From Antechinus flavipes (Eukaryota), in assembly GCF_016432865.1 (NCBI RefSeq), contig NC_067403.1:254138001-254202000 (forward strand): a stretch of DNA of 64,000 nucleotides, in the 5' to 3' direction. The first letter of the stretch is position 1. Every line of letters begins with the position of its first letter. The position numbers and the translations under genes are program-made. The notes under the pieces are model-generated. The model was not told the origin of the DNA and ran no database searches. It saw nothing but the letters and a program-made list of their open reading frames with translations. Below are positions 16,201 through 47,790 of the stretch, piece by piece.

Positions 16201-19200
16201 CGGAAGATTTTGCCCATTGTGAGCACCCGGGGTTGTTCTAAATTTTGAGCCAAAAAGGGCCATTTCCTTCATTGTACAGGTAAGGAAACTGAGGCTGAGA
16301 GGTTAGATGACTTGCTAAAGGCCATACAGCTAGGACATGGTGGAAGCAAAATTCAGCATCCCTAACACGGAGCCAGGGTTTGGAGAATTGTAAGCTGCTC
16401 ATCCCAGATCTGGGGCTCCGGGGGGAAATGTAAGTGTGGGGACATCACAGGGTTCAGGTCACTCGGACAGTCTCTTAACCAAGAGCCGGCCAGGAGGTGG
16501 CACAGGTGTGCCTGGGGCCTGAGCTGGGGAGTCGCCATAGTGCAGTATGGTACTGGGATGGTCTGGCCAGACCACCTGGGGAAGGTGTGACAAGACTCTG
16601 GGCAGTGACATTCGAGCTCCAGAAGTCAGAATCCTGATTTCTGGGGGCTTAAATGGTGTCTCAGAAAGAACCCTTGAAGTGGCTTCAAGAGTTCTGGGTC
16701 CTATTACTAGCTGTGAACAAATCACTTCCCCTCAGAAGCCTCAGTTTCCTTCTCTGTAAAAAGAATGTAATAGCATTGACACTGCTGATTTCCATCTCTC
16801 AGAGATGTGAAAATGGACTTTTGGAAGCAGGAAAATGCCAGCTATGTGGGGGGGGGGGGGGAGAAACCCCTGCGATGCCCCATCCCTTTCCCCATCCCTC
16901 TTTATCACATGCTTGCAAAGGGCTTAGCCCAGTATACAGTAGCCACTCAATAAGTGGTTGCTCTCTTCCTCTAAGTCAAGGTGTTGGAGAGTGAGCTCCA
17001 AGGGCAGGGATCTGGCCGGGATTGTTATTGTTGGAGGTAGCCATGATACCCTGGCCAGGGCAGAGCCTGAGAGAGGCCACCCAAGAAAGGTCTTGCCAGG
17101 GGAGGGAGAGAATGCCAGCTCCTCCCTCCCCCTTCTTACGCCTGCCTCCATTGCTTCTCCCCTCTTCAACTCCTTCTAGCTCCTGACTATAGGACTGAGG
17201 CTGAGGGGACACTCTGGAGGCAGGGACAGGAAGAAGACTCCCTTACAGGCATCACAAGGGGGTCATCTGTGGGAGCAGTGGTCTGGAAGTGAGGATGGGA
17301 GGGGGATTGCGACCCAGGCAGAGAGATTTCCAGGGAAATAAATGGGTTTTCCCAGAGAAGACCTGGGATTTCAGGGAATGTATTCTCTTTATCCATTCCC
17401 AGGGTGCTGAAAGGGCTGTAATGCCCCCCGTTCAAGCGGCCGTCTAGGTAGCTGGTGCAGTGGACCCACTTGGTACGCTATCAGGAACATCTGAATTTAA
17501 ATGTGGCTTCAGACAAGTACTAGCCGTGTGACCTTGGCCAAGTCCCTTAATCTATTGTAAAATGGAAGTAAGAGTGCTTGGAACACCGAAGGCACTTAAT
17601 AAACTCTTGTTCCCTTTCCCTTCGCTTCCTCTCGCCTCAGTTTCCTCATATGGGGGGGTAGTGCTCTCCATGCCTCTCTCATAGGGTTCATATGCACAAA
17701 AAAGTGGGGGATGGGTTCTGGAAAATCGAGCGACAGACCAGTCCCTCTGGAGTTGCCGTTCCCCGTGGGCACAGAACAGGTGCTCACTGGTCCGCCGAGT
17801 TCCGAGCCAGAGCAGGGCAGTCCGACCTCCACTCGGTCTGCACAAACCTTCGGCTCCCTCGCCCAGGGCGCAGCTTCGGGAGCAGAACAGGGAGCTCAGT
17901 CCTTGACTCTTCCCTCGAGCTCCAGGACTCTCCCACGGGGTCACCCGAACCCCGAAGGCTGCCTGTGCCCCCGAGACAAACTCCCCGAGTGGGGCTGAAA
18001 CGAAGCTTCCTAGTCTCTCCTTAATTTCCCATCCAGGGGGGCTGGAGGAGGGGGAGAAGGAGGAAGAAGCTTCGCGGGGAAGGCTTGTTCTCGGACCCAG
18101 AGACAGGAGGCGGTGGTCTGGCGGACCTGGTTCCATCCATCCATCCATCCACGCATCCGTCCCTCCGTCCATCTGTCCGTCCCGATTCCTTCTTCCATTA
18201 TTGGCCGAGCCCGGGCGCAGAGTTTAGAGTCCTAGTGTTGTTGGCTCTGTGGCCTGTGAAACCATGGGAAGCTTCTTTCCGTTTCTGGGCCTCAGTTTCC
18301 CCATTCGTCAAAACAAGATGGCAGGATCGTAGATTCGGGAGAGTTCGAGGTCATCTAGTTCTATTCTTCCTCTTACTGAGGAAGAAGCGGATCTTTTGAA
18401 GTCGTTTGCTTTTTTCAAACGAGTGCCGGGCGCCCAGCTGGGGCTGAAGTCCGGAGGGATCCTCAGGAAAGAAGTTTCGCGAGTCGGCTCCCGACCTCCC
18501 GGCTCCCAGAGACCCCCTCACCTGAGCAGCCGGGCCCCGCGCCACCCCCAGCCTCTTCCCTTGGAGAAGAGCACGCGGGAAGGAGTTGAAACCCGTTCCA
18601 GCTCCGCCACTTCTTTGCTGTGAGATCTTGGGCAAGTACTTTCCGCTCCGCAAAAGGAGGCATTGCACCTGACACTTCTAAAGGCCCTTTTCAGCTCCGG
18701 ATCTTCGGATCCCACGGGAAGGAGGCTGGTCCTGGTGCGAGCGCTCTCTCTCTCACCGCAGGGGCTTTTTACAACAGGTGGCTCCCGTCCCCACCCCCAT
18801 TTCTGTCCCCTCCTGCACACGGGCCTCCTTCTCCTCCCGTCCTCGCGTCCCCGCCTCTGCTCCCCAGCCGGCCGCCATGACGAACCCGCTTCTCCCTACC
18901 CCCATCGAGCTCCTCGCCCCCTCCGGTTCCGGGGGCGCAGCCGGAGCGGGCGGGGGCGGGGGCGGGATGCGTGCTCCAGCTTCTCCCTCCCCTTCTCAAG
19001 CGGCCTCCGATTCCCTCAGGCCTCTGTTCTCTCGGCCCTCGCCGCTTAGGGCCCCCAGACCTCGCTTAATTCCTCCAGGCCAGCCCTCCGACTCCGCGGT
19101 TAACATTTCCGAGATGGGGAGGGCGGGGGGTGGGGTGGGGGGCTGAGGTCTCGGGCCTGCCTTTGCGGGGGGAGGCAGAATTCGGTCTCCAGCCTCTCGG

Positions 19201-19611
19201 ACGGCTCCCCCTCCCCCCCCCCCCCCCGCCACGGTCCCCGGGGCCGCTCCGCCCGAGCGCGGCCTTTTGTCTTTCCAGTCCAAGATCCCGGGTTAGACGC
19301 GTGGGTTTGGCGGGGCGCGGGGAGGGGGCGTAAGAACGGCCTTAGCCTGAATGTGGAGAGATTTTCTTCCTCCCGAGGGGCGGAGGAGAGGGTGCGCCAA
19401 CGAGTCTACGGATAATGGCGTGAATTCTCCCGGGGAGCTGGGCCTCCGAAGGCCATTTCCCCAGCTCTGGGGGCCCCTCGAGCGGGGTCCGGATGCGGGC
19501 CCCGGGGTGGGGGGATTCCAGGCAATCTGAGCCCATTCCCCCGTGAGGTCACTCAGGGCCTGACCCAAGAAGCGGGTTCCGATCTGAGGATGGCACCTGA
19601 GAGGAAAGGGG

Positions 19612-19768
19612 TGTGTGCGCGTGTGGCCGTGAGTGTGCGTGAGTGCGTGTGTGGCTGTGTGTGCGCGTGTGGCTGAGTGTGTGCGTGTGTGGCCGTGTGT
19701 GCGCGTGTGGCTGAGTGTGTGCGTGTGGCTGAGTGTGCGTGGGTGGCTGTGCGTGTGCATGTGCGTGT
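19612..19768. repeat. ~20-bp GT/GC minisatellite inside the CpG island
   Basis: Units like GTGTGTGCGCGTGTGGCTGA. Confidence 0.8.
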
Positions 19769-20976
19769 GGTTCCCAGGGTCCGGACCTCTGCACTTCCAG
19801 ACCCCATCCGCCTCGATTCCCCATCGGCCGCCGACTAGGCGACAGGACAGTAGTAGGGGGGGCCGGCCCCCGTTCCCGCGGGCTGGGTCCCCGGCCCGGC
19901 CGCGCTCACGACCTTCCCCCGCACCCTTCTCCGAACCGTTTCTACGGCTGTAGGGCGGGCCCTGGGACAAAAGGTCTGCTCCAAGCCGGGAGCTCTGTCC
20001 CGAGTCGCAGACGGTCACGGTTGGAGGGGCCCTTCCATGCAGACCCTTATCTCACAGTTGGGGAAACCGAAATCCCGAAAAGGAAAGGGACTAGTTTAAG
20101 GTCACACAGGGTTAACCACCCCGAGATCCTGACGCCTAAGCTAGGGCTCCCCGCCCCCACGCCCTCCCCTCCCCCGCCTCAGTTTGGCCATTGTCCCCGT
20201 TTGGAGGTGGGGCGGGAGGGGATGGGCAGGTGTGTCCTCGCCCTCCGCTCCCTTAAGTCTCGGCTCCCTGCCCTGTCCCGAAGCCTCCGACGCCCGGTGG
20301 CGAGGACCCGGCTCGGGTTCCCTGGGTCCTGGCAGCCGCAGATTTAGCGCCCTCGGGTCACGCCGCCAGAGATGAGACAGCCGATAGAAACCAGAAGCCC
20401 GGGGGCTGGGAGTGGCGCGCGCCCGGGGCCGCTCGGCCGCCTTCTCCCCACCCCCGCCCCCGCGAGCCTCCAGCCGCCTCCGGCCCCTGCCCCGGCCGAG
20501 ATCTCGAGGGCGGCTCTGGGCTGGGGCCGCGGGAGTCCGGGGGACACAGACCCCAGCCCCAAAGGAGCTCACGCAGCGGGGCGCAGGGGGCGGGGGCGGG
20601 GGTCCAGCCTGTCCTGCCCAGACCCTGCTCTGTCCGCCGCACCCCTCTAGCCCAGCCCGGTCCGGCACGCGACACTCCCCGGACCCCTGCCCCCTCTTCT
20701 GCGCCCACCCCTGGGCGGGGCTCAGGGCAAAGACCCCCGGAGTCACTTACCTGGGGTGGCCCCTCACGCCGCGCCCCGGGCTCAGTTCCAACGTCAGGCC
20801 CAGCTCGGGGCTGACGGAGCCGGGGCTCTGGCCCCTGGGCCCTGGGTGGCGTCGGGGCCCCCAGCAGCTCCCTCCACCTCCTCTCCGCCTCCGGAGCGCC
20901 GGGCTGCCGGCCGCTCCTGCCCGCCTGCTTGGGCCGAGCTGCGCTGTGCCGAGGCGCAGCGGAGGCACCTCCCGCC

Positions 20977-20990
20977 GCGCCCCCTAGTGG
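20977..20990 (-). promoter_or_regulatory. CTCF consensus site
   Basis: CCACTAGGGGGCGC on - strand, a perfect match to CCASYAGRKGGCR, inside a CpG island. Confidence 0.7.
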
Positions 20991-21839
20991 GCGTGGGGTG
21001 CCCCGCGCGGCCGAGGTCCCTCTTCGCTATTTCCATCGTCACCCACCCCCTCGGTGGCTCCGGCTCGGGGCGGGGGGTGGGGGTGGGGGGAAATAGTCTG
21101 GAGCGCGGCGCAGCCGGGGCTGTGCTAGCTTCGGAAGGCGCTGGGAGGGGAGCTCGGACCGCCCGGGCCCTGCCGGGGGGTTTGTCCAATTAATCGACCT
21201 CCCCCCTTCCTCCCCATCCGCGTCCCCCTGCCCGGGTCAGCGACACTTGGAGTAGAGGCTGGGGCCAGGGCTGATCCCTGCGAGAAGGCCCGAGCCCCTT
21301 ACCGCCCCCCTCCCCGTCTGGTCCCTTCCCCCTCAAGGAGACCACCCCGGGCCTTGCGGCTGGGCGCTGCCTCCAGCACCCTGGAGCTGACCCGAGTGCA
21401 GCTGTGCTAGTCATTTCTTCTGATTGGAGGCCTCGGAGGCCGCCTGTTTACTGTTCCTGCCGAGTCTGGCGGCGGGGAGATTAATGGGGCACAATTGAGT
21501 TAGGGCCCCGTGGCTGGGGCTGGGAGGAAGGAGGCAGGGGGGAGGGGAGGCTGCCTGCTGGGCCTGGCCAGTGGCACCGGACACGCCCTAAGCTGAGCCC
21601 CCGTGGGGGGGGGGAGGAAAGCCGGGGAGAACTGGGGGGAGCTCAGTATGAAGCCCCAGAGAGATGGCTGCCCCAAATGAGGAGCCCCCATCCTTCTGAT
21701 TTCTGCTTTGAACCTGGCACGCCCAGGCCCCGGAGGGAAGGAGGAGGGAGACGGAAGCTGCTCGGGTTTTCCAGAAGGGAGATGAGGCAAGCCCCCTCAG
21801 CCAAGGCCCTCAGCCAAGGCACAACGTCCAAGAAGACCC

Positions 21840-21845
21840 TTTATT
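21840..21845 (-). terminator. Polyadenylation signal AATAAA of the OAT paralog
   Basis: tttatt on + strand about 220 nt beyond the stop at 22062. Confidence 0.6.
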
Positions 21846-22061
21846 AGCCACCTAATGTTTCTGCTTACCAAAAGGGAAACTGAGGCAAGATCCCAGAGCA
21901 GCAGGCCTGGGGCCTGCCTGCCCGGGCATGGTGTAAATAGGGCTGAGCCTCCTGTTTCCAGGGCTGCCAGCTTTTCAGCCCCGGGGGGACAGAAGGTGGG
22001 TGGGGGTGATGGGGTGAGCCAGTGAGGAGGTGGGAGACTGGCTTTTCTTAGCATCGTCAGC

Positions 22062-22266
22062 CTAGGAAGCCCTTCTGGAAGCAGCTGGCCGCTCCCACTC
22101 CTCCCTGAGGAGGACCAGGCCCGGAACAGCAGGCAGGGGTACGTGTGGACAGGCCAGGAACGTCCCGGGCGTCCTGTCGGCCCCGTGGTCTTGGGCGTGG
22201 GAGACGTCCTCTGGTCGCCACGGAGGCCCGGCTGCCAGCTGCCCTCTCCTAGGGACCCGTGTCCTG
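22062..22266 (-). CDS. OAT paralog candidate terminal exon (acceptor ambiguous)
   Basis: NAGNAG acceptor (exon starts 22266 or 22263) gives a ~67-codon tail ending RRAS*; an alternative acceptor (exon start 22279) gives [10 protein letters not shown]. Confidence 0.4.
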
Positions 22267-23542
22267 CTGTTGGGGGAACCTGAAAGACCCGACAGGTTTG
22301 GGGTGAGTGGGGAGGTTTTAAAAGGAAGGGGGAGTTCTAGGAAAGGCGGGGGAAGGGCTAAGTTGGCACCCACCTGTTCTCCACCTCTTCCACTGTGTCC
22401 TTCAAGGGCCGGTTCCTGGTTTCTGGCAGCCCAAGAGCCACGAGACCCGAGAGCACAGGGATGGAGCCGTAAATGATGGGGGGCACCAGAGGCATCTGCT
22501 CACCCGTCAGCTTTACCAGTGGGGCCACGATGCCCCCCACTCGGGCCATGGTGCTTCCTCCCCCCAGGCCAGTCTGCCTGGGTGGGGGGGAATCCAGTTC
22601 CAGAGGAGAGAGGGCGAGTCAGGGTCAGGCAGGAATCTCCTTGTCCCCACCCAGCACCTCCCAAGCACCCCATCCTAGCCTGGGTGGCCAAGACCCGAGG
22701 TTTTGCAGCTTATCCTGGTCTTTAACATTATTTATTTATTTTTACTGAGGCAATTGGGGTTAAGTGACTTGCGCAGGGTCACCCAGCTAGGAAGTGTTAA
22801 GTGTCTGAGGTCACATTCGAACTCAGGTCCTCCTGACTTCAGGGCTGGTGCTCTATCCATTGCGCCCCCTAGCTGCCCCATCTTATCCTACTTTTAACCC
22901 CCTAGAAAGGAATCAGGGGAGCAGCCTTATCCTTCGTCGACCCCCACATCCTGTCTCCCAGTCTTGGCTCCAGACAAAAGACAGGAAAAGAATCTTGGAA
23001 GGGGCAGAGAGCTAAGGAGTGAGCACAGGCTGCTGTGGTGGAGACAGGGAGGTCAGTCAGCCTCCCTTTTGGAGGCCCGTGCCCTGAACCTCTTCGCTTT
23101 AAATCCAGCACAGCCGGGACCACTTTCCCAGGGCCACCCATTCCCACGCCCCCAACCTCATTCCAAGCAGCAGGGCCCTTCAGGGAAGCCTCAGAGGCTG
23201 GCACCCTCCGGCGAGCCTCGGGAAAGGTCCCCCACCTGCCTTTTCCACTCTGGCATTCCCTTTTCTCCGTGTCAGCCCTGCCCTGTCCGGCGTCCCTCCC
23301 TCAGGGGCCGCCCACCAGCTTCTCAGCCTTAGGAAGGCATCCCAGGTCTGGCCCCCACCACAAGCAGCTGGCTGCCCTGGGAGCTCAGCCGGCCCTACCT
23401 GATGGCCGTGGGGTACAGCTCCCCCGTGTACAGGTACACGCAGTTGAAGGAGGCGGCCAGGCAGCCCTTCCCTAACACCGCCAGAGTTGTCCGAAGGGCG
23501 GCCAGTTCTGAGAAAGGACACAGATGGGATGCTAAAGGTGTG

Positions 23543-23596
<54 letters not shown>

Positions 23597-26500
23597 CTGA
23601 GAGACAGAGAGACAGAGATAGACAGACAGACTGACAGAGGGAGGGGACAGAGAGAGGGAAAAAGACAGGTAGAAGAGACAGTGAAAGAGGGACCAAGGAG
23701 AGTGAAAGAGAAAAGAGGGAGACAGAGACAGAAGGAGAGACAAAGGAGAGAGAAAAATAAGGGGGACAGAGAGACAGGGAGACAGAAAAGAGACAGAGGG
23801 ACAAAGAAAGGAGGGAGAGACAGAAAGACAGAAGGAGGGACAAAGGAGAGAGAAGAAGAAGGGGGAAAGAGAGAGACAGATACACACACACACAGAGACA
23901 GAGGGAGGAAGAGAATGGGTGTGACATGACAGACATGTGTGAGCATGTCTGTGTGCATGTGAATGGTGTATTCACATAGATAGAGCCCATGGGAAGCAGC
24001 TCAGCCCAGTCCTGCAGACCCCCTAGATCTGCTCCATCCCATTGATGTCATTGTTCAAAGCCCCAGAAAACTGGAAATGGAGGCACTCTTGTTCCTGATT
24101 TCCTGGTGACAGCCCAGAGACTTCCCCGGCATCACGTGGCCCCGAATGCCAGCTCGCAGGGTTTCCGGGAGCCCTCTGCCCCTCCATGTGAATGGGCCTC
24201 CCTACCTGCTCCCTTCAGGACCCGGCCACCATCCGGAGTCCCAGGCTGGGGCCCAGCTGCCTTCCTCCTCCCTCCTGGTCGGGTCAGAGTTGAGACTGGT
24301 TGCTAAAACCCCAGGGCTAAGAGGGCGAGAGGGAGCAGGCCCAGGCCTCCTAGGGGACTCCCGCCCCCTCCGTCCTCGGTCCCCTCTCTCAGTTCCTTCT
24401 CTTCCACTCCATGAGTTGCTGGGGGCAGCTTTGCCGTGTTAGGGACGTCACGAATGTGAAGTTAGAGGAAACTGAGTTCTTTGGAACGGGTTGGAACGAG
24501 GAACCCAAGAAAAGGGCGTGCGTGGGGTCCAGTCCCAGCCAAGTTGTCTTGGGTACATCACCTCCCTAGCCTGGCCTTGTCACCTGATAGTAACAGCAGC
24601 CAACATTTCCCCGCCAATCCTGAATCCTAGTACTATTTGAGAATAACTCTTGTGGCCTCAGTTTCCTCATCTGTACAAACAGGAGGTTGGATTAGATGGG
24701 GAGAAGATGATTCTGAGCTCTCAACCCTAAGAATCCATCCATCCGAATCAGAGTCTTGGGCGGGGGGGGAGGGCGGGGGGGGAGAAGGAGAGTTGGCTCC
24801 CTCTGGGTGACCATGAGCTTGTTATAGTGATTTGGGTGCCCTCTGGTGAGGGGAGAAAGTCAGAAGGTACCACTCTGGGGACTGAAGGAAACTTCTGGAA
24901 GATCATAGATCAAAGGATTCAGACTTGAAAGAAGCCATACAATCCAACTCTCTCATTTTACAGATAGGGAAACTGAGGCCCCAGAGATTGTGACTTACCA
25001 AAGATCACAGGTAGTAAGTGAAATCGTATAGCACACTCCTATGTAGCTAGGGAGATCTAAGTTCAAAACTCATTTTACTAACTGGGCAATGATGAACAAA
25101 TCATTGACTTTCCTCAGTTTCCTCATTTGAAGAATGGGGCCGAACCTAGTGGAGACTCGGGCTCCGGGAGGCTCGAGGTTAGTGCTTCAGGCCGGGCAGG
25201 AGGGGGGCCGTCCGGGATAGGCTCTCACCTGTGGGCACCAGGAGGTTGGCCAGGATACCCAGGCCAGCGAGCACCAGGGCGGTGACTTGGGCGACCCTGC
25301 GTCCAGCGCGGCTCATGGCCAGAGTGGACAGCAGCTTGGCTGGGATATCCACCATCCCGAACAGCAGCTGCAACATGTGGACCCGTAGCCCGAAGCCCTG
25401 CAGGTCCATGGCCACTCCATAATAGGCAAAACTGGTAGCGAACCTTTGGGAAGAGAGGGGGGGAGGAAAGGAGATGTGGGGAGTCTCCGCCCCCGTTGCC
25501 CAGCCTGGGACTCTTCTGGGAGGGAGAGATGGGAGGGAATGGAATCAGGAGGAGTGCGGGAGAGAGATGGGGCCCTCCTGCTCTGGGGGGGAGAGAGATG
25601 GGGGCCTCCCACCATTGGGGCGGGGAGAGAGATGGGGGCCTCCCGCCCTGGGATGTCCACTGGTTTCCCATTCTAGACCACAGTTCTACGGCTCCCAAAG
25701 GCTTAGAAAGCCTTTCTCACAGATCTGGAACTCAAGATCTTATAAAAATGAGTGTTGAGAACTATGTTTACGTGTGATTGGAAAAAATAAAATACCATCA
25801 AATGAAAAAGAAACACACAAAAGCACCTTTCAGTCATCGCCTTCTCTCTTTTCCCAACAGCTCTGTGGGCCAGGGGCTCCTAGTTTTTTTATCCCATTTC
25901 TGGAACCCTGTCATCCTCCTCCCGCTTGGGCGTCTCACTCCGGGTGGTCCCCATTAGGCGCCCCCTTTCCTCCACATCCCATATTCCCCTGGGCCTGCCC
26001 AATATCACACGGCTCACTAAGGCTGGGCCTCCTGGGAAGGGTCGCGCTTGAATAAAAACCATCTGCTGGATGTGGTCCATGAGCCATCCCATTTCCTTAC
26101 TTATTATGTTATTTAAGACCCACTCACAGGACGCTTTTGCCTCGAACTAAACAGAGAAGACAGAAGGTCCATGAGCCAGATCATGACTTATTTCCCCAGA
26201 TTTTCCACCCTCCTTTCTCCCCTTGTGGTTCTCGTAGGCGCTACTATGTGGAATAGAAGCTATGGCTTGCTTGTCATCTCAGAGGCATAAGGAACCGGGT
26301 TCAAATCCTGCCTGTGACATGTGCAGGCTGGATGATCCTCTCGGTGTTCTAGGCAACTCCCTGAGAGCTATAAGCTGGAGAAAAGCTGCCCGTCCACACT
26401 GGGATAGGGTTCGTTACTAGGCAAGATTCCGGGTTTAGCGCTGAAAGGACCTTAGTCTGATTCTATAGATGAGGAAACTGAGGTCCAGAAGGGGTCACTA

Positions 26501-29500
26501 GCTTGTCCCAAGGCCATCCAGGGAGTGAGTGACCCTTTATGACCCCAGAGACTTGGCTTTCAGACTCAGTTTTTCTGAATAGAGCAGAGTAGCTTCTGAC
26601 ACTATCGTGATCTGGGGGCTGGACGACATCCCCTGAACATAGCCGGGGCCACCCACAGTTATGGGGCTGCTAGGTGACAGTGGAAAGAGCTCTGGACTTG
26701 GAGACAGAAAGGCCTGAGTCAAACCTTGCCTTAGGTGCTCATTAGCTATGGCCATTTGTTAATCTCTTTCAGCCTCAGTTTCCTCATCTGTAAAATGGGA
26801 CAACAAGAGCACCTACTTCATAGGATTGCTTGGGAAGATCAAATGAGACAATAAAGTGCTTTGTAAACTTTAAAATGCTCTAGGAAGGGTGAGTCCCCAT
26901 CCTAAACCTACTTCAGGATAAAGTCGGGAGGCCTGCCCGCCAAGAACCTCCCAGGGAACCCCAGAAGAACCAAGAAATGTGTCTGTGGAGGGTGGTGGCC
27001 AGACCTGCCCTTCATCATCTAGGCTTTACACGGCTTAAAATGCCAGATAAAGGGTCTGTGTGTCCCTCTGACCAGGGCTCCAGCCCGGCGCCTACCAGAC
27101 AGCGGCGAGACACTTGGAGATGCGCCGAATGGTGGGCGTCTGGATCAGGTCCCAAGGGGTTCCGGGGGCCTGAGCCAAATCCAACTCTTTCTGAAGATGG
27201 GNNNNNNNNNNNNNNNNNNNNNNNNNNNNNNNNNNNNNNNNNNNNNNNNNNNNNNNNNNNNNNNNNNNNNNNNNNNNNNNNNNNNNNNNNNNNNNNNNNN
27301 NNNNNNNNNNNNNNNNNNNNNNNNNNNNNNNNNNNNNNNNNNNNNNNNNNNNNNNNNNNNNNNNNNNNNNNNNNNNNNNNNNNNNNNNNNNNNNNNNNNN
27401 NNNNNNNNNNNNNNNNNNNNNNNNNNNNNNNNNNNNNNNNNNNNNNNNNNNNNNNNNNNNNNNNNNNNNNNNNNNNNNNNNNNNNNNNNNNNNNNNNNNN
27501 NNNNNNNNNNNNNNNNNNNNNNNNNNNNNNNNNNNNNNNNNNNNNNNNNNNNNNNNNNNNNNNNNNNNNNNNNNNNNNNNNNNNNNNNNNNNNNNNNNNN
27601 NNNNNNNNNNNNNNNNNNNNNNNNNNNNNNNNNNNNNNNNNNNNNNNNNNNNNNNNNNNNNNNNNNNNNNNNNNNNNNNNNNNNNNNNNNNNNNNNNNNN
27701 NNNNNNNNNNNNNNNNNNNNNNNNNNNNNNNAAGCTCCCTTCTTCTGGGGCTCTAAGACCTAGGGGAAAATGGGTGTGGAGGAAAGGGGGGAACGTAATG
27801 GGCAGCAGGCTTTCCCAGACTCCTGGAGTGAGACCTCCAGCAGGGGGAGGATGAGAGGGATCCCAGAAACCAGACTCATTGCTCCATGCATGGCCAAACA
27901 TCATAGCTAATGGCAGGGTCCAGCTCTCAGGGTCACTTACATGTCAGTTCTTCTCTCTTCTCTCACCTCCCCTCTCTCCCCACCCTCCTTTCCCTTTCCC
28001 TTCCCTCTCTCCCCACCCTCCCCCCTCTTTCCCTTCTTTTCTCCCATCCCCCCTTCCAGGGGAGCCAGGTCTCCCTGGCAACTCCTTCACCTCGATGCTG
28101 AGGCTGTCTCCTTCTGCTCTCCTCCCGTTGATGCGAGCCACCCTCTTCAGCACCTGGATGGCCTGCTCTGGTCTCCCAGCCAGGACCAGCCACCGGGCTG
28201 ACTCTGCAAACCACCTAGTTGGGGGCAGGGGGCAGAGGTCACGGTCTCTGGGAGCTGTTCCTGACCAGGCATCTTCCCTGCATGTCATTCCCACCCAGAA
28301 GCCCCCAACTCTTGCTTGAGAGAGCAGCCTGTGTGTCCTCAAGCAGCCCCTGTGCTTGGGAAGGCCCTAAGCCACAGACATTCTGAATCCCCCCCACCCC
28401 CCCTTCTTCCTCCCCCCCCCCATTGCCCCAATTCTGCCCTCCGGTGCAGCTTTCTTCCACGTGTTGTTCCTTCGCTTTCCCGTGTCCGAATCTCTGTGAC
28501 CCCATTTGGGGTTTTCTTGGTGGAGATGCTGGAGAGGTTCGACATTTCAGCCCTTCAAATACTTGCAGAAAGCTGACTTGTCATCCCGAGTCTTTTCTCC
28601 AGGCTAAGTGTCCTTAATAGCCCTGTTTCCTTCAATTAATTCACATATAGTCTGATTCGTGGCCCTTCATCCTCCCTGTCTCTCTCTAACTTATCAGCAT
28701 CCTTTCCAGAACGTGGGCCTCAGGGCTGAACACGCTGCTCCTGATGGAGCTGGATCAGGGCATGATACGGAGAAATTGCCATCCGGGTATTCTGGCTTCA
28801 TGAACACAGGACACGGTTCTATTAGATCCTTTGTTTACCATGTTGAGGTCACTTTCCGCTTCATGCCTTGGGTCTTTTTCTTGGTGAGAAGCCATTTCAC
28901 AGTGCTCCAGCTCCCTGTCCCCCCTTCCCCCACTTGCACTGAAGACATTGATTTCTTGAACCCAACTGTAACACTTGACATTTATCTCCATGAAATTTCA
29001 TCTTTTTATCCTGAAAAATTTTTAAGGGGCCTGAGTTTTTCCATTCTGTTAATTATCCTTCCTAGCCTTGTATTATATATGCAAATTTGAAAAAAAAGTT
29101 GTTCTCTTCAGAGGCAGTTTGTCACAGTACGAAGTCACTTAATCTCAGTCTGCCTCCATTTCCTCCTCTTTATAATGTGAATAACAACAGCACCTATCTC
29201 CCAGGGCTGTGGTAGAGATCCAATGAGATACTATTTGCAAAGCATGGATTTTTGTGATTGTTATTCTGTTTCTTTACTCAAAGATACAGGGATGGATACA
29301 GGAAAATGGATAATATTCCAGGCAGCTCAGTGGATAGAGAGTTGGATCTAGAGTCAGAGAGACCCGACTTCAAATAGAGCCTCAGACATTTACCAGCTGT
29401 ATGACCCTGGCCTAGTCACTTAGGTTCTGTTTGCTTCCATCCACTGGAGAAGGAAATGGCAAAGCATTCTGGGATCTCCGGACGGCTTCCGCAGGCACCG

Positions 29501-32500
29501 AGTCAGACGTGACCGAACAGCCACAAGCCGAGCCACGAGTAGGAATGTCAGCCAGCACAGGACAAAGTGGGAGTCCCTGGGACCCTCCCCTGGAGACTCG
29601 GAGATTCACACTCTGTATTCACTTAAGGCTCCGTCCTGTAGCCTGCATCTTGCTGCCTTTCCCACATAATACTTTGTTACAATCTAAGAGCAGGGAAAGG
29701 ATTGCTTGGATACTGTTGCTAATTGTAGCTCCTTCTCTTCCCTGGATATTCCTAGAGGAAAATCCCCCTTCTTCTTCCCACCACAAGGGGGCAGTAGGTC
29801 CAGATTTTCCACCTCTTCCCTCTTCCCAATGGGGAACTCCTGCAGGTCCAAGTTTGGTCTTTTTCATCCTTCATTTCACATGAATATGAATTCATGATAG
29901 TTAATAATTTTTACACCTGGGAAATCACGTGATCCGGCCATTTCTTTTTACAGAGGAGGAAACTGGGGTCCGGTAGGGTCGCCCACTGATGATGGGTGTT
30001 GCTGGGGGAAGCACGGCCCCTCCCGGATCTCCCTGACCCCCACCCCCACTTGTTCCCCCCCTTATGCACCCCTGCCACACGGGGCCATTCGGAGCCGACT
30101 CCTAAGTTTGCCCAAAGAGTTTCAGCCAGTTGCCCCAACCCTAATTCCAGGTTCTAGCTGGACACAAACCCAGTTCTGGATAAAACTAGAACCCTAGTTC
30201 TAGCGTTGATTTTGGGTTCCCGTTACACAGGGTTTCCACCATAGTATGAAATAGAAACGGGGTGGGGGGGCGTGATACGTTTGGCTGCCGTTAACGTGCC
30301 TACCAGGAGTAGCCGAAGAAAGCAAAGAAAGGCATCGAGAGCGTGAGCTGGAGCCAGCGCCAGTTGGGGAGGGCGTACGCCAGGCCTGGGAGAAGTATCT
30401 GCCCGAGGGTGGCAGAATAACTGACCAAGGTCCCCGTCATCGTGCGGGTCCGGGTGGGGGACCACTCTAGAACTGGAGAGAAGAGAAACAGTCACCTTCC
30501 CCCTCTGCCCCCCAGGTTCCTTATTCATTCAACACACATGTTCTCCTAAGTGATTATTGCCAAGATCTCTCCCCTGTGACATTTTAATTTCCTTTTTTTT
30601 TCAGCATTAATATTCTCTATTCTAAGATTCCTTTTATTCCTGGCATCTTCTGTTCTACATTCTAACAATCTAGGTTTTAAGGTCCCTTCCAAATGGGACA
30701 TTCTGAGTTCTAGAACCTCCATGACAACATTCTGTGCTCTTAGGTCCCTTTTGGCTCTGTGAGAGTATGTTTTCTGTTCCATCATTCTGGATTCTAAGAC
30801 CCTTCTCTACTTTGGCATTCTGTGTTCTAGAATACAGAACATAGATTCCCAGTTCTGACAGGCAGTTTTCTAAGATCCCAGCTTTGATGGCCAATTTTTT
30901 ATGTTTTAGCTTTCTAAACTTTAAAATTCCTTTCAGTGTTCTAAGATCCCTCCCAGTTATGGTATTCTGTGCTCTAAGGAACCTTTTAGCTTTAGTGTTT
31001 GGTGTTCTAAGTCCTTTCCAATTTTGATATTTATGTTCTAAGGAACCTTCCAGTTTTAGCATTATGTGTTCTAGGTCCTTTTAGCTATATATTTCTCCCA
31101 GTTATGGTATCTTGTGTTCTAAGGAATCCTCCAGCTCTAGTATTTGCTGTTCTAAGTCCTTTCTAGTTCTGCTATTTATGTTCTTCCAGTTTTAGCATTA
31201 TGTGTTCTAGGTCCTTTCTAGCTCTGATTCCTTTCTAAACATGCTATTTCTCCCAGTTATGGTATTCTATGCTCTAAAGAACCCTCTAGCTTTAGTGTTT
31301 GTGTTCTAAGTCCTTTTCAGTTCTGATATTTATGTTCTAAGGAACCTTCCAGTTTTAGCATTATGTTTTCCAGGTCCTTTCTAGCTCTGATTCTTTTCTA
31401 GCTTTGATATTTTCTGTTCTAAGGAACCCTCCAGCTCAGCAGTCTTAAGCCATTTCCAGGCCTGATAGCTTCTGTTCCATCATTCTGGGCCCCACTCATG
31501 GCCCTGGGATCTGTCCCTCTGCCCATTCCCTTCTTCCTTTCTCATCCCTGCTCCCGACTCCTTCAACCCTACCCTTCCCCACTCCCCAGCTTGCTCTGAC
31601 TCCCGGAACAAGTCATTAGGTTTCTATTCACAAGGAAGCCGTGCCCTTCCCCCCCGGGGACCTTCTTTCTGTCTGCCCTCCCAGAAGCCCCTGAAGGTGT
31701 CTCGCCCCCTCCCCAATCTTCAGGTGGTCATTGGCCTGTGAGCCCGGGCCCCACATCCGGGGCCTGAGGTCCCTGGCCTGGGCTCGCGCTCTGCCAAGCT
31801 GTTTCCCCGGGGACAGAGGGTTAACAGGTCCCGAGCTGAGCCGGCCACGTGCGCTCTCTGGGCCAGAGCCAGGCCGGGGGAGGGGGCGGACAATGGAGTT
31901 GCCTAGAGCGAGCTTGGCGGAGGGCAAGGACTTCAGAAGGGGACGGGGCCGTGTTTATAGTAATCAGAGAACTTTCCCCCCCTGCTTAAGCCTTCAGGGC
32001 ACAGCTTAGCCCTAAGTGAACAGGGAACCCCACAGTGCCCAAACACTTTGTGCTGTGCTCGAGAATTCTGGGTAAGAGGAGGAGGGGGCCCAGAGCTCAG
32101 GTCCAGAAGCCAGGAATCCTGGATTCTAAAGGTGGGGGAAGGGATTAGGGAACGAGGGGGAGAGAGGTTGCAGGGGGAGGGGGGGAGGGGAGAGCAGCCG
32201 CAGGATGGTGGCAAGGGTGGGACAGGATGGGGAAGAAAGGAGCAAAAATGGAGGGATCTAAGGGCAGCGAGCACCAGAAGTCAGGAGGACCTGAGTTCAG
32301 ATCTGGCCTGAGACACTTAACACTTCCTGGCTCTGTGAGGCTCTGGGGTTCCAGAGCTGGAAGGTTGATTCCTTCACTTTACAGATAAGGAAAATGAGGC
32401 CCAGAGAGGGAAGATAACAAGCATTTATTTAATACCTACTGTATGCTAAGAACTTTCTGCAGATATGATCTCTCACAACAACCCTGTCCTAGAGGAGCTA

Positions 32501-35500
32501 ATTAGTATCTTATGGTTGAGGAAACTGAGGGCAAATGGAGATTAAGTGCTTAAGCAGATGGCCTCTAGCGGTGATCCCACAATACCTGAGGTCCTTCAGG
32601 TCCTATAGAGGCCGGCACTGAGCCTCAGACTTTATCCCAAAGTCTCTGGTGCTGAGTGGTTGTGTCTGACTCTGTCTTGAATCCAATAGCCCTCTGGTTG
32701 GTCTGGCTGCCTCATGCCCCCCCCATGCCAGGGCACAGTCTACTCCACGGCTAAAGACACTTCCTAAAGCCCAGTTCTGACCATGGCATGCCCATCCTCC
32801 CTTCCCATCTATAACCATCAATGGCTCCCTATTACCCCCAGGATCAAATACAATCTTTGGTTTAGCTGTGAAAATCCTTCCAAGCCTCCCTGCTCTTCTA
32901 CATTGGTTCCCTCTCCCTGTGACCCTTCCACCCAGCTCCCCTGGCTGCCCCCCACACTTGAAAGTTTTCCTGCTTCACCTTTGCCTGCCGGCCTCCCTGC
33001 CTCCCTTCAAGACTCTGATTGAACTGTACCTTCCCCCAAAGCTCTTTCCTCAAGCTCTCTTACTTCTGCGATAACCTTCAGTCTGACTTGCGCGTATCTT
33101 GTTTGCTCACGGCTGTTCGTATGTTGTCTCTCCTGTTAAACCGTAAGCCCCTGAGACCGGGACCGTGGCACCCCCTGTGCTAAGGGCTCCATGAATGTCG
33201 GCTGGCCCCGGGAAGGGGAGGCTGCGCGGGACACTCACCCAAAGACATGCAGTTGAGGATGATCCCAGAGACGGCCATCCCGACCAGGAAACGCAGGGCG
33301 CAGTAGGTGGAGAAATTGGGGGAGAAGGCGGTGGCGGTCCCCGCCGCCCCCAGCTGCAGGTAGGACCAGCTCAGCAGGGCCTTCCGGCCAAACCTGGCGG
33401 GGGGAGCGGAGGATCAGGGCACGGGGAGGGGACAGAGGGCACTGTGACCGGGACCGGGAGACAGAGGCAGGGCCAAGAATGGGGGGGACAGGGTTCGTGG
33501 CCCTCAGGGACAGGGGACAGAGGGCACTGTGACCGGGACCGGGAGACAGAGGCAGGGCCAAGAATGGGGAGACAGGCCGAGGATGAAAGATCAGGACAGA
33601 GAAGACGGAGCCGAAGGATGCTGGGGAGGAGGGGAAGGAGAGGGAGCTCGGATTAGGAGGGTCTTGGGCCAGAGGTCCAGGATGAGTGGCCGGGGTCGCC
33701 CCTCCGCCCTCCCTCTACCCAGGCCAGAGTACCTGTCTGCCAAGCTCCCAAACGCCATGGCTCCCACAAGGACCCCTGCCATGTAAATGGATTGTGCCAT
33801 CTGGGTCAGTTTCCAGGAGTCACACACCAGGTCCCACTGTTTCAGAGAAAGGAGAAGGGCCTGAGGGGTTAGGAGGGACAAACTGGGAGTTCAAACCGGC
33901 CCCTGATTGTTCTCTCTCACCAAAACACCCCCACCAGGGCGATCGGGAACCCTTCGGACAGAGTCTGTGGTAAAGGTCTCCAGGGTCACTGAGGGTCCAG
34001 TCTCTGAGGTGCAGAATCATCCCCCAAGGTTATGGAGCTGCCAGAATGTCGCAGGCAAGGGATGTTTCCCTTGTGTCTCCCTAGGGTGGCCTGGTATACA
34101 GTAAGCACTTAATAAGTGCTTGCTGATAGGTAGATTGATCTTTCTCTGAGGATTGATTGGTGGTTAAAGATGGAGGAGAAGCCTTCACTTGGGCAGAGGA
34201 TCATGGGAGGAGAAGCAGATCCAAGGGTGGGGGAGTCAAAAGTGTTGTGAATGACCCAAAGGGGAGGCCCTCAGGAGACGCCAGCTTGAACTGGGGAGGG
34301 CCGATGGCGTCTTCGCCCAAGATTGGGCGCTGATGATTCCTCTGTGACAATAAGCTAGACTAAGTCTCTGTTGGTCCCACATCGTCCCTGTCCCAGCCCT
34401 CCCAGTGCTGATCTCCTCCCACTCCTCTGCCCACTTCTTCAACCCCCTAGAGGAATGGCTTCTGCTAGGGAGCTATGGCCATGCTTGGACAGTGCCCTCC
34501 TGAGGCAGCCTCTCTTCCACTTCCTGACGGACCTCAAGCCTCAGTTTACCCCTGGAGATGCCCCCCGTTGCTCCAGCTTCTGCTCCCTGGGGCCGAGCAA
34601 ATTCAATCTAGTCCTTCTCAAAGTCCTTGGGCTCGTTGACCATTGACTCTTGGCCACTTTGACCACTGACTCTTGGCCACTCTACGCGGCCCCGATTCCC
34701 TTCGGTCGGCGCTCCCACGGTGCATCTTGGGTCCCTTCACCCTCTGGGCTCACTAAAGCCCCCCCAGAGCGCTCAAGTAGGAGAGAGGAGGGGGCCGCCG
34801 GGTCACCTTCACGGTTAACTTAGAATCCATTAAACCCCCAACGGCTCCTTCAAGACCCCCTGCTCTCAGCCAGACCTCCCAGAGCTTGTCCCAGGAAAGT
34901 GATTTTTCCAACTGAGGCACATGGTTCCTCACTTAACGTGAGCCGTCACCTGACTGGCATCTCGCGTTAGCCATCCCTCCTGACTTTGGGTCATGAGCAC
35001 ATTTGGGAAGGGGCCATTTCTGTCTTTAGAGGAGCTGATAAAAGTGAGGAGCGGGACGGGGATGAGCCCGGATCCGTGAGGTGCTCCACCAGAGGCCCCC
35101 CAGGCAAGGGGCGCTCAAACGTAGAGGCGGTTCCCGATGGCTTTGTCATCAGCCATGTCGGAAGCCCTCTGACTGTGCCAGTCACCGGAGCTCGCCTTGC
35201 CATCTTTGCCACATGATTAAGTCTATGGCACATCAGGTGATCCTGTGGCGTTCCTCAACTTACCCACTCGGTAACTCTGCTAGGAAAGGACATGGGGTCA
35301 CCCTGGCAGGACTTTTCCCATCTAGTCTCATCTCTCATCTGGCAGATGGAGGCCAGAGGGAAGGGACTTCACCAAAATGACCTGGGGGGGGGGAAGAGAC
35401 CTCAGCTCTCCAGCTCTCACGCTCTGAACCTGCTAGCAGGTCTCTTCCTCAGGCCGGCCCCTCATTACCTCTGTCACGATGGTAGCCTCGAACTCGCTGC

Positions 35501-35855
35501 GGTCATAGGTCCATCCGTCTCGGCACGGTTCAGTGGCGGGGACGCTCCCGTTGGGGGAGGTAGCGTTGGGCTCCAGGATCTGCCAGTGGGGGCGGGAGAA
35601 CTGCCGGCACCTCTCGGGCTGGTGGCCCTCGTCCAGTGGCACCCACAGCCGGAGGAGCCTCTCGGAGCTGAGGTTCCCCGTCTGGCCGAGGGGCACTGGC
35701 GGGAGCCGGCAGTGGTGTGGGGGCACGGCCGCCGAGAAGTTCTGCAGGAGGTTGTGAGAGGCCGTCAGGAGTATGGGGGCCACCAGGGCGAGGATGTGCA
35801 GCCGTTGGAAGAGCCCCAGTCCCCCGAGCTGCTCCAGCAGGCTGGCGAAGGTCAT
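22062..35855 (-). CDS. Second SLC22 organic anion transporter (OAT1/OAT3/OAT6-like paralog), apparently intact
   Basis: Exons 35469-35855, 33733-33836, 33239-33393, 30304-30472, 28091-28214, 27096-(~27211, 5' end in N gap), 25229-25443, 23399-23507, 22374-22577, plus an uncertain last exon. Sizes 104/155/169/124/215/109/204 match OAT1; GT-AG; no stops or frameshifts in visible sequence; Kozak ACCACCATG. Confidence 0.9.
22374..22577 (-). CDS. OAT paralog exon 9 (204 nt)
   Basis: [26 protein letters not shown]...[19 protein letters not shown]. Confidence 0.92.
22727..22879 (-). mobile_element. Full-length tRNA-derived marsupial SINE (WSINE1-like) in intron 8 of the paralog
   Basis: Head GGGGCAGCTAGGGGGCGCAATGGATAGAGCA, B-box GAGTTCGAAT, A-rich tail, diverged flanking repeat CTTATCCT..TTTAAC. 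Confidence 0.85.
23399..23507 (-). CDS. OAT paralog exon 8 (109 nt)
   Basis: [37 protein letters not shown]. Confidence 0.92.
23546..23920. repeat. (GT)n followed by a GA-rich tract next to the exon 8 acceptor of the paralog
   Basis: Seen directly. Confidence 0.85.
24835..24849 (-). promoter_or_regulatory. CTCF-like site in intron 7 of the OAT paralog
   Basis: TCACCAGAGGGCACC on - strand, one mismatch. Confidence 0.45.
25229..25443 (-). CDS. OAT paralog exon 7 (215 nt)
   Basis: [18 protein letters not shown]...[25 protein letters not shown]; AAG acceptor. Confidence 0.92.
27096..27201 (-). CDS. OAT paralog exon 6 (partial; about 10 nt and the acceptor fall in the N gap)
   Basis: [35 protein letters not shown]; donor TG|GTAGGC; 116 nt expected by analogy with OAT1. 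Confidence 0.85.
27202..27731. other. Assembly gap hiding the start of paralog exon 6
   Basis: N run. Confidence 1.
28091..28214 (-). CDS. OAT paralog exon 5 (124 nt)
   Basis: [41 protein letters not shown]. Confidence 0.92.
28640..29090 (-). mobile_element. L3/CR1 fragment
   Basis: Degenerate similarity to the CR1 RT 3' region, recognised by eye. Confidence 0.45.
29318..29526 (+). mobile_element. Mar1-like CORE SINE with an RTE/BovB-type tail
   Basis: tRNA head followed by CCACTGGAGAAGGAAATGGCAAA...AGTCAGACGTGACCGAACA. Confidence 0.65.
30304..30472 (-). CDS. OAT paralog exon 4 (169 nt)
   Basis: [57 protein letters not shown]. Confidence 0.92.
30590..31470. repeat. Degenerate L3-tail array, opposite orientation, in intron 3 of the OAT paralog
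   Basis: Repeated TTCTAAG(G)..CCTTCCAG.TCT; 30949-31085 closely repeated at 31251-31385. Confidence 0.75.
33239..33393 (-). CDS. OAT paralog exon 3 (155 nt)
   Basis: [51 protein letters not shown]. Confidence 0.92.
33733..33836 (-). CDS. OAT paralog exon 2 (104 nt)
   Basis: [35 protein letters not shown]. Confidence 0.92.
35469..35855 (-). CDS. OAT paralog coding exon 1 (387 nt)
   Basis: [17 protein letters not shown]...[18 protein letters not shown]...[21 protein letters not shown]; donor GAG|GTAATG. Confidence 0.92.
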
Positions 35856-46100: not shown

Positions 46101-47790
46101 TAGATCATGAGGCAAGAGAATGGACGAGAAAGTGTCTCTCCAGGCTACTTAAGGACAATCCAGGGAAGTTTGAGAGGCCTGGAAGTTGTAGGTTGTTAGA
46201 GGGAGAAGGGGGTGAGCACTGGGGGCCGAAGGGGTCTGGGGAGCTGGGTCTTGAAGGGTGGGCATCCGGCTCTCTTCCTCCCAGCCCGGGGCCTTCTCCT
46301 TCCCTTGGCTCTCTGTGCTTCTCTCTCCCTGGGTCTTCCCAGAATGGGAGCCTCCTGTCTCTGACCCGACCCCCCACCTCACACCCGGAGCCCCAACATG
46401 TCCCAGGACTGACCTGTCCGCCAGGTTCCCAAACACGGACGCCCCGATGAGCACCCCCGCCATGTACAAGGACTGGCCCAGTTGGCGCAGGGCCCTGTGT
46501 CCGCAGACGAGGTCCCACTGTGGGGAGAGAGGGGGTTGGGGCGGGGGCTCCCCTCAAGCCGCTCGGAAAGCTTGCTTGGTTCACCTCCCCGGGGAATGGC
46601 AGCTTTGGGGGAAGAAAGTCAAGAGGAAGGGGAGGAGCCGGAGGGGAATGGAGACAGAGAGGGGGAGAGGCTTCTTTCCTCTGCCCCAGCTCCGTGCTGG
46701 CCCCTTCTCCCCCTTTATCCCCCCCAAGCTGGCCCCTTCTCCTTCCCCCCGATGCTGGTCCCTTCTCCTCTATCCCCTCTATGTTGGTTACTTCTCCCCT
46801 CCATCTCTCCCCATCCTGGCTCCTTTTCTTCCTCTGTCCCCCCCATGCTGGCCCCTTCTCCTCCCCCCCATGCTGGCCCCTTCTCCTCCTCCATCTCTCC
46901 CCCATGTCCACCCGCCTACATCTGACCCCCAGTGTCCCTTCTCTCTCTCCCTCTTCTTTCTTCCCCCTCCTTTTATTCCGACCTCTGCCCAGCTCATTCC
47001 CTCGTCCCTTCCCTTCTCCCCCATCCCTCCTTTCCCACAGCCGTCCCTGTCTTTTTCCTCCTCCTCCTCTCTGAGTTTTCTCCCACCTTGTTGCCTCCTG
47101 CCCTGTCCCCGGCCTCCCTCTGAACCCCTTCTCCTCCCCCTTCCTTCTCTCCAGAGCCCCCCTCCCCTCCCCCTTCCTCATCCCCTCTCTCACCCCATCC
47201 CCTAGTGTCTGAGCACTCTTGCCTAAGGAAGCCAGGAGTCTGCTTTCCTCAGCCCTGTATCTTGCCTCTCTCTTTTTTACCCTTGTGTTTGGTCTCCCTC
47301 CCTCAAATAGGGAAACTGAGTCAGAAAGCTGCAGGCCTGGGCTTCCCCTGGCCAGGGAGTCCAGCCAGCCTCGCTTGAGTCCCCGTAATCCCCTCCCCAG
47401 GCCCCTCACCTCGGTCACAATGGTGGCGGGGAAGGTGCTGTGGTCATAGGTCCAGCCGTCCAGGCAGGCCTCGGTGGCTCCAGTGGCATTGGATCCCGTG
47501 CCGTTGGACCAGTGTAGCCCCCTTTGGGGGGCGGTAAAGCGACGGCACGAAGCCGGCCTGCCCTGCTCATCCCGGGGCAGCCAGGCCCGCAGCTCCTCCG
47601 CTCCTGAGCCGTCTCCACTCAGGTTGGCGGAGGGCGGTGGGCGGCAGTGGTGGCCGGGAATGGCGGCCGTGAAGTTCTGCACGGTGTTATGAGAGGCCAG
47701 CAGCAGCATCGGGATGACCACCAGGGTGAACTGGACCCACTGGAAGCGGCCCACCCCTCCCACCTGCAAGAGGATGTCATTGAAGGTCAT
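37593..47790 (-). CDS. SLC22A6: Organic anion transporter 1 (SLC22 family, MFS), 10 coding exons, 1656 nt, 551 aa
   Basis: Exons 47410-47790, 46414-46517, 45530-45684, 43690-43858, 42663-42786, 42331-42446, 40696-40910, 40451-40559, 38073-38276, 37593-37671. All GT-AG, phases join into one ORF. OAT1-diagnostic peptides [58 protein letters not shown]-terminal [11 protein letters not shown]. Confidence 0.93.
38073..38276 (-). CDS. SLC22A6: OAT1 exon 9 (204 nt)
   Basis: [21 protein letters not shown]...[19 protein letters not shown]; donor AA|GTGAGT. Confidence 0.95.
38285..38785. repeat. GA-rich/(GA)n tract (with N gap) in SLC22A6 intron 8
   Basis: Seen directly. Confidence 0.85.
38435..38622. 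other. Assembly gap
   Basis: N run. Confidence 1.
38770..40200. mobile_element. L2 fragments in both orientations, SLC22A6 intron 8
   Basis: L2-like text, e.g. GATCAAAGCCCTTCATAACCTGG and GGAGGCCAGTTAGGAGGCTGTT. Confidence 0.5.
40451..40559 (-). CDS. SLC22A6: OAT1 exon 8 (109 nt)
   Basis: [37 protein letters not shown]. Confidence 0.95.
40696..40910 (-). CDS. SLC22A6: OAT1 exon 7 (215 nt)
   Basis: [18 protein letters not shown]...[32 protein letters not shown]. Confidence 0.95.
41215..41445 (+). mobile_element. MIR/Ther-1 CORE SINE
   Basis: tRNA head, CORE CCTCAGTTTCTTCATCTGTAAAATG, L2-type tail TGGCACATAGTAGG. Confidence 0.75.
42331..42446 (-). CDS. SLC22A6: OAT1 exon 6 (116 nt)
   Basis: [39 protein letters not shown]. 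Confidence 0.93.
42663..42786 (-). CDS. SLC22A6: OAT1 exon 5 (124 nt)
   Basis: [41 protein letters not shown]. Confidence 0.95.
43075..43111. repeat. (GT)n microsatellite
   Basis: Seen directly. Confidence 0.9.
43690..43858 (-). CDS. SLC22A6: OAT1 exon 4 (169 nt)
   Basis: [25 protein letters not shown]...FFLYSW. Confidence 0.95.
45530..45684 (-). CDS. SLC22A6: OAT1 exon 3 (155 nt)
   Basis: [18 protein letters not shown]...[12 protein letters not shown]. Confidence 0.95.
45757..45812. repeat. (TTCA)n/(TCAA)n microsatellite
   Basis: Seen directly. Confidence 0.85.
46414..46517 (-). CDS. SLC22A6: OAT1 exon 2 (104 nt)
   Basis: [35 protein letters not shown]; AG/GT flanks. Confidence 0.95.
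47410..47790 (-). CDS. SLC22A6: OAT1 coding exon 1 (381 nt)
   Basis: ATG at 47790; MTFNDILLQ...FPATIVTE; donor GAG|GTGAGG. Confidence 0.95.

Follow-up and report, generated by a model that had tools for sequence, protein, structure and literature searches.

Gene Content of the Locus

The stretch of DNA analyzed in this work (the window) comprises 64,000 nucleotides (nt) of the marsupial Antechinus flavipes (RefSeq assembly GCF_016432865.1, contig NC_067403.1, positions 254,138,001 to 254,202,000 of the forward strand), and window positions are counted from its first letter. It contains exactly two genes of the SLC22 family, both on the minus strand. Gene A, the ortholog of OAT1 (SLC22A6), occupies the stretch between 47790 and about 37.7 kb. 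Gene B, the subject of this study, is an SLC22 organic anion transporter (OAT) gene of 10 exons and 537 codons, which starts 2.2 kb downstream of gene A and runs from 35855 down to 22249. Its exon boundaries were placed from the window sequence, and the features are as follows (TM, transmembrane helix; residue positions according to the rat OAT1 structure paper, PMC10643130):

35855-35469, minus strand: exon 1, 387 nt; ATG at 35855 with A at -3; TM1 and most of the large extracellular loop
33836-33733, minus strand: exon 2, 104 nt; fourth loop cysteine (WDLVC); same size in gene A and six orthologs
33393-33239, minus strand: exon 3, 155 nt
30472-30304, minus strand: exon 4, 169 nt; TM5, which bears Ser227 and Ala230 (OAT1 numbering) as the signature of the clade
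28214-28091, minus strand: exon 5, 124 nt; ends in phase 0, donor GTGAAG
27202-27731, no strand: assembly gap (run of N); it conceals about 10 coding nt of exon 6 together with its acceptor and the adjoining end of intron 5
27201-27096, minus strand: part of exon 6 outside the gap, 106 nt (116 nt expected); reading frame open and shared with exon 7; donor GTAGGC
25443-25229, minus strand: exon 7, 215 nt; TM7-TM8; Tyr353, Tyr354, Asp378 and Lys382 retained
23507-23399, minus strand: exon 8, 109 nt; TM10; Lys431, Phe438 and Asn439 retained, Tyr in place of Phe442
22577-22374, minus strand: exon 9, 204 nt; TM11-TM12; Ser462, Thr463 and Arg466 retained; donor GTGGGT
22279-22249, minus strand: exon 10, 31 nt; stop codon TAG at 22251-22249; a last exon of 31 nt also in five marsupial orthologs
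21845-21840, minus strand: AATAAA, probable polyadenylation signal judged by sequence only, about 400 nt past the stop codon
47790-38073, minus strand: coding exons 1-9 of gene A, the OAT1 ortholog, 71% identical to rodent OAT1

A sequence-only reading of this locus had described a gene of the OAT type 3' of OAT1, with clean exons, a good start context, four loop cysteines and the exon sizes of OAT1, and these observations hold. All readable junctions of gene B carry GT/AG, and the readable coding sequence of 1604 nt (the coding sequence of 1614 nt minus about 10 nt in the gap) contains neither a stop codon nor a frameshift. Exons 2 to 9 equal those of gene A in size and phase, with the size of exon 6, which is 116 nt in gene A, being unreadable here. 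Two details had to be corrected. Instead of nine coding exons there are ten, since the C-termini of the orthologs together with a good acceptor demonstrate a short exon following exon 9; the count of nine probably came from reading exon 9 past its donor. The AATAAA counted as part of the gene does exist, but the single copy downstream of the stop codon sits at 21845, outside the range that had been given. As that reading had also surmised, the gene has already been annotated automatically, because our model agrees with the RefSeq protein XP_051819797.1 ("SLC22A6-like isoform X1", A. flavipes) at 533 of 533 readable residues.

The encoded protein is 53% identical to rat OAT1 over 522 residues and is thereby a member of the OAT1/3/6 subgroup of SLC22; its orthologs carry the Sugar_tr and MFS_1 domains (PF00083 and PF07690). 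The large loop between TM1 and TM2 is present with four conserved cysteines, three of them in the exon 1 translation, which also contains three N-X-S/T sites. With exon 1 alone, the best matches in the PDB were rat and human OAT1 (E 3e-36). A scan for HNF1 sites with up to two mismatches in the 1.5 kb upstream of both start codons returned none; the transcription starts are not located, so this result is uninformative. Within intron 7, long CT/CA microsatellite tracts at 23530-23900 produce spurious open reading frames (ORFs) on either strand, the longest with 237 aa. Similarly, an ORF of 568 aa at 46105-47811 is exon 1 of gene A read past its donor into a purine-rich intron, and represents no gene.

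Reading Frame and Purifying Selection

The assembly gap abuts exon 6. This exon has 116 nt in gene A and in five orthologs, and with this size its first 10 nt, i.e., three codons and one base, are unread in the window. The visible 106 nt start inside a codon, with two of its bases, and when full-length relatives are aligned, four residues separate exon 5 from the first residue that can be read in exon 6. This is consistent with an exon of 116 nt whose first 10 nt and acceptor lie in the gap. Exon 5 closes in phase 0, and what is visible of exon 6 is open in the frame leading into exon 7, so that the frames on the two sides of the gap are compatible. The last part of intron 5 is a C-rich/CTG-repeat tract in related dasyurids, which could plausibly have caused the gap for technical reasons.

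It is improbable that gene B is broken or silent in A. flavipes, i.e., a young pseudogene with its defect hidden in the gap. The gap does cover the exon 6 acceptor, and exon 6 of the Sminthopsis ortholog has a net deletion of 1 nt. Against this stand the 1604 readable coding nt without a defect, the full-length RefSeq model of 537 aa, which fits all readable residues and also spans the four residues at the gap, the repeat tract that may explain the gap, and a low ratio of nonsynonymous to synonymous substitutions (dN/dS). This ratio was determined pairwise by the Nei-Gojobori method (NG86) over 498 shared codons in 21 pairs. It lies between 0.10 and 0.16 in 21 of the 21 pairs, with 0.105 for gene B against Sarcophilus and 0.16 against echidna, and is thus not near 1, the value that, combined with a lack of expression, the sequence-only reading had named as a refutation.

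The Sminthopsis crassicaudata ortholog (L001:20312-20471) deserves a separate remark: the net 1-nt deletion in its canonical exon 6 falls in a C-run and would lead to a premature stop. By means of non-standard splice sites, the RefSeq model XP_074132481.1 dodges the deletion, exon 5 being lengthened to 132 nt and exon 6 cut to 90 nt. The change is either real for this lineage or an assembly error.

Orthologs and Their Annotation

Orthologs were collected by a word-indexed search with a profile of the exon translations, whose backbone came from gecko and hagfish and did not include exon 6, and a cluster look-up added more. An exhaustive profile search with exon 1 returned no representative above 59% identity; its best full-length match was a gecko "SLC22A6-A-like" protein with 55-57% identity. 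Annotated orthologs of gene B are present in the marsupials Sarcophilus, Sminthopsis, koala, wombat, bilby, Dromiciops, Gracilinanus, Monodelphis, tammar, Petaurus and Trichosurus as well as in the monotremes echidna and platypus. Their names are inconsistent, comprising SLC22A6-A-like, SLC22A6-A, SLC22A6-like, SLC22A6 and, in UniProt, SLC22A8; the last is carried by the opossum ortholog A0A5F8H335 ("Solute carrier family 22 member 8"). Some models are also deficient around exon 6: Sarcophilus XP_031799509.1, named SLC22A6, contains retained intron sequence in its place, and the Ensembl/UniProt models of the Sarcophilus and wombat orthologs are without it.

The coding sequences of six orthologs, stitched by exact-word chaining, translate exactly to the annotated proteins. 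All six are built of 10 exons like gene B, and five of them share the plan 104/155/169/124/116/215/109/204. The exceptions to this plan are tammar, with an exon 6 of 110 nt, and the non-standard Sminthopsis model.

Phylogenetic Classification

The main maximum likelihood tree (LG+C20+F+G4) comprises 80 rows, and support is given as ultrafast bootstrap/SH-like approximate likelihood ratio test; the bootstrap had not converged completely (correlation 0.982, with 0.99 as the target), and its values are therefore rough. Gene B and the other marsupial and monotreme genes form a clade of 11 rows with support of 100/100. Together with genes of crocodilians, turtles and squamates they make up a clade of 22 rows (100/99) that includes no other row, and a tree of 71 rows agrees, with 100/97 for the corresponding clade. 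Gene B is found outside the clades of OAT1 (five rows, including gene A, wombat and echidna; 100/99), OAT3 (10 rows; 100/100) and SLC22A20 (degu, dugong and Pelobates; three rows, 100/97). Because the sauropsid orthologs group with the mammalian clade of gene B, the underlying duplication is placed before the split of mammals and sauropsids.

The sequence-only reading had proposed a separate OAT subfamily kept in marsupials and absent from eutherians, and had named 1:1 orthology of gene B with SLC22A8 or SLC22A20 as a finding that would refute it. The trees bear out a separate lineage and speak against such orthology. Judged by sequence, the lineage extends further than proposed, to monotremes, crocodilians, turtles and squamates.

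An assignment of gene B to SLC22A8 (OAT3) could draw on the UniProt name of the opossum ortholog and on some OAT3-like strings in TM5-TM6. A search seeded with rat OAT3 and dugong SLC22A20, however, retrieved separate OAT3 genes, 64-67% identical to rat OAT3, from seven marsupials (Sminthopsis, koala, opossum, Dromiciops, bilby, Trichosurus and wombat) and from platypus and echidna, and these group with eutherian OAT3 at 100/100. In Sminthopsis, OAT3 lies about 30 kb upstream of the gene B ortholog on the same chromosome. Gene B is 53% identical to opossum OAT3, and the approximately unbiased (AU) test rejects a union of its mammalian clade with OAT3 (p 0.014). Since both genes co-occur in the same genomes, this assignment is refuted, with a negligible probability left to it.

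Equally negligible is the probability that gene B is OAT1 itself or a recent marsupial copy of it. In favor of this, gene B is the tandem neighbor of OAT1, has an identical exon plan and is called "SLC22A6" or "SLC22A6-like" in RefSeq. The place of the OAT1 ortholog is taken by gene A, though, and further OAT1-type genes, separate from the gene B ortholog, are found in wombat and echidna; gene B is only 53-55% identical to OAT1. The synonymous divergence (dS) between gene A and gene B amounts to 0.6-1.6 in the eight exons in which it could be estimated and is thus near saturation, exon 5 being saturated and without an estimate. Moreover, the sauropsid orthologs place the duplication before the amniote split. 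Tree and dS together refute a recent origin, in accordance with the sequence-only reading, which had taken gene B for an old gene.

That reading had based its view on identities of 56 and 76% to the neighboring OAT1 in exons 4 and 8, and we found 55 and 75%, respectively. Its impression of a mosaic protein, OAT6-like, OAT3-like and OAT1-like in different exons, did not stand: per-exon identities to gene A, marsupial OAT3 and degu SLC22A20 range from 32 to 75% and differ by a few residues, so that gene B is about equally distant from all three in every exon. Among the sequences compared, the alligator clade member is closest to gene B in every exon. Gene conversion with OAT1 was considered as the source of the high identity in exon 8 and ruled out (dS 1.58, dN 0.15). 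With dS from gene A close to saturation throughout the exons, nothing points to gene conversion, and the identity of exon 8 reflects constraint rather than exchange.

An SLC22A20 (OAT6) ortholog that moved next to OAT1, as the OAT6-like strings of exon 3 and its identity of 63% to degu SLC22A20 versus 60% to gene A could suggest, is extremely improbable, given the separate SLC22A20 clade of degu, dugong and Pelobates only, the AU test against a union with eutherian SLC22A20 (p 0.007) and the residues Met382 and Ile439 of SLC22A20, which are unlike those of gene B.

Sauropsids possess about five paralogs of the OAT1/3/6 subgroup, two of them on one alligator contig and five on one chromosome of the gecko Sphaerodactylus. 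Their "6-B-like" clade, located upstream of the gene B ortholog in alligator, is among the rows nearest to OAT1 and may represent the sauropsid OAT1 ortholog. Among the tree rows, no bird sequence lies inside the clade of gene B; birds fall into another sauropsid paralog clade and appear to be without this lineage.

Gene Order

The position directly 3' of an OAT1-type gene on the same strand is shared by the window, Sminthopsis and echidna. On Sminthopsis chromosome CM109186.1 the OAT3-like gene is found at 249.051-249.065 Mb, the OAT1 ortholog ends at about 249.022 Mb and the gene B ortholog follows at 249.004-249.020 Mb, so that the order OAT3, OAT1 and gene B is realized on one strand within 61 kb. 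In echidna, the gene immediately upstream of the gene B ortholog is a Sugar_tr/MFS gene that most resembles gene A in its last exons. In opossum, the immediate upstream neighbor is a Sugar_tr/MFS gene as well, and in alligator it is the "6-B-like" gene. With OAT3, OAT1 and gene B in a row, the arrangement corresponds to the placental order SLC22A8, SLC22A6 plus one extra gene at the 3' end.

The next gene at this position would, by placental synteny, be CHRM1. Positions 1-22000 of the window contain no long ORF resembling a G protein-coupled receptor. Right after the 3' end of gene B, at 18000-22000, lies a CpG-rich block with a GC content of 64-70%, which may be the promoter of the next gene.

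Absence from Placental Proteins

For the search in placentals, the Sarcophilus ortholog was used as single protein query and the best 120 matches were evaluated. They rank from marsupials (84-94% identity) via echidna (77%) and the sauropsid clade (61-66%) to other sauropsid and amphibian paralogs down to 54%. No placental ortholog is among these 120 matches; the single placental entry is a fused two-domain whale model with 52% identity. A placental ortholog would be expected to rank above the sauropsids.

Residues of the Substrate Pocket

Gene B and its clade retain Asn35, Tyr354, Asp378, Lys382, Lys431, Phe438, Asn439, Ser462, Thr463 and Arg466 of OAT1. Tyr353 is present in the mammals of the clade and in Pogona, and is Phe in alligator and turtle. 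Two exchanges, Tyr230 to Ala and Phe442 to Tyr, characterize the whole clade (eight of eight members examined), and position 227 is Ser in marsupials and Gly in echidna and sauropsids. The combination of an aromatic residue at 230 with Gly227, typical of alpha-ketoglutarate-driven OATs, is thus not found in gene B. In human OAT1, the exchange Tyr230Ala results in a transport-deficient protein, Gly227Ala triples the half-maximal inhibitory concentration (IC50) of alpha-ketoglutarate, and Gly227Val abolishes transport (PMC10643130). As these pocket residues (230, 442 and 227) differ from OAT1, gene B is expected to have a different substrate range and perhaps a different preference for the counter-ion.

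A side observation concerns gene A, whose exon 9 (38276-38073) encodes Met at OAT1 position 463, which is Thr in rat; the OAT1 of wombat has Asn462 and Met463. Since the OAT1 mutants Ser462Ala and Thr463Val lose their sensitivity to chloride (PMC10643130), regulation by chloride may be absent from marsupial OAT1, whereas Ser462 and Thr463 are unchanged in gene B.

Comparison with Known Transporters

OAT1 (rat and human structures 8BVR, 8SDU and 9J02) belongs to the same family of major facilitator superfamily (MFS) folds as gene B and resembles it in the plan of exons 2 to 9, in the large glycosylated four-cysteine loop and in being its tandem neighbor. It differs in that gene B forms a separate clade predating the amniote split, has Ala230, Tyr442 and, in marsupials, Ser227, and has no placental member among the annotated proteins. 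OAT3 shares the subgroup and the gene cluster, being located in marsupials on the same strand upstream of OAT1. Its identity to gene B is 52-53%, it possesses Gly350, Asn462 and Leu, Val or Thr at 463, and it is represented by separate genes in placentals, marsupials and monotremes. SLC22A20 is of the same subgroup and at a similar overall distance (53%), and shares Tyr442 with gene B, but carries Phe230; the human gene is situated at a different locus.

Further known relatives are the sauropsid "SLC22A6-A-like" genes (for example Alligator sinensis P0208, Trachemys P0202 and Pogona P0220), which the tree identifies as orthologs with 62-66% identity. They share Ala230 and Tyr442, and the alligator member is likewise the second gene of a tandem pair; in contrast to gene B they keep Gly227. 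In the papers searched, we found no functional characterization of these sauropsid clade members and no description of the gene B lineage. Zhu et al. (2015; PMC4633038) listed one opossum "A6" and neither A8 nor A20 for opossum, and stated that OAT1 was not found in monotremes. A fourth, ancient and constrained OAT lineage with a distinct pocket that is missing from annotated placental proteins thus appears not to have been described before in the papers searched.

Discussion

Taken as a whole, the sequence data make it very probable that gene B is a selectively maintained gene of a fourth lineage in the OAT1/OAT3/OAT6 group, functional as far as the window is readable. This lineage would have arisen by tandem duplication before the split of mammals and sauropsids, directly 3' of OAT1 and on the same strand. 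Its living carriers are monotremes, every marsupial order sampled, crocodilians, turtles and squamates; it is missing from the annotated placental proteomes, and among the sequences analyzed no member from birds was encountered. What the sequences show directly is the structure of the gene, its orthology and genomic order, the purifying selection acting on it and the states of its residues, while transport activity, substrates, the expressing tissue and the losses are inferred.

The product is predicted to be an MFS carrier of 12 helices that probably exchanges organic anions across the membrane like OAT1. Lys382 and Tyr353/354 would hold a dicarboxylate, as in OAT1, and the Asp378-Lys431 lock, the Asn35 gate and the chloride staple of Ser462, Thr463 and Arg466 are retained from OAT1. 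Gly227, which makes room for alpha-ketoglutarate in OAT1, is Ser in marsupials, and the pocket, reshaped also by Ala230 and Tyr442, would account for the altered substrate range and, perhaps, counter-ion preference.

Several points weigh against this interpretation. The window sequence does not show the continuity of exons 5 and 6, which are compatible in frame, and the intactness of the gene is therefore not proven. The branching order among the paralog clades is without resolution in the trees. The absence from placentals refers to annotated proteins and not to genomes, and the window contains no coding exon of CHRM1, the presumed next gene. As to expression, the figure in runs labelled or guessed to be RNA is 5-9% of the sampled words from a stretch of which about 16% is exonic, which is suggestive at most. 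Finally, the effects of Tyr230Ala and Gly227Val in human OAT1 might mean that the carrier encoded by gene B works unlike OAT1, or not on the usual test substrates.

A further-reaching proposal is put forward tentatively, with slightly less than even confidence. Gene B may encode a functionally distinct, uncharacterized transporter with an enlarged, more polar pocket, whose substrates or driving counter-ion are unlike those of OAT1 and OAT3, and which has stood beside OAT1 for more than 300 million years; a single loss would have occurred on the placental stem and apparently another one in birds. If this is true, placentals manage their renal or sensory anion handling with fewer genes.

Drugs, toxins and many metabolites are taken up in the kidney mainly via OAT1 and OAT3, and models of how these transporters evolved and function reckon with three genes in the subgroup. 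A fourth lineage of equal age and under strong constraint would show what placentals lost, and its clade offers a natural experiment on the pocket residues 230, 227 and 442, which mutagenesis has marked as decisive. The inconsistent names currently given to its members can mislead ortholog-based studies. The lineage would also be relevant when drugs and toxins are studied in marsupials, monotremes and reptiles.

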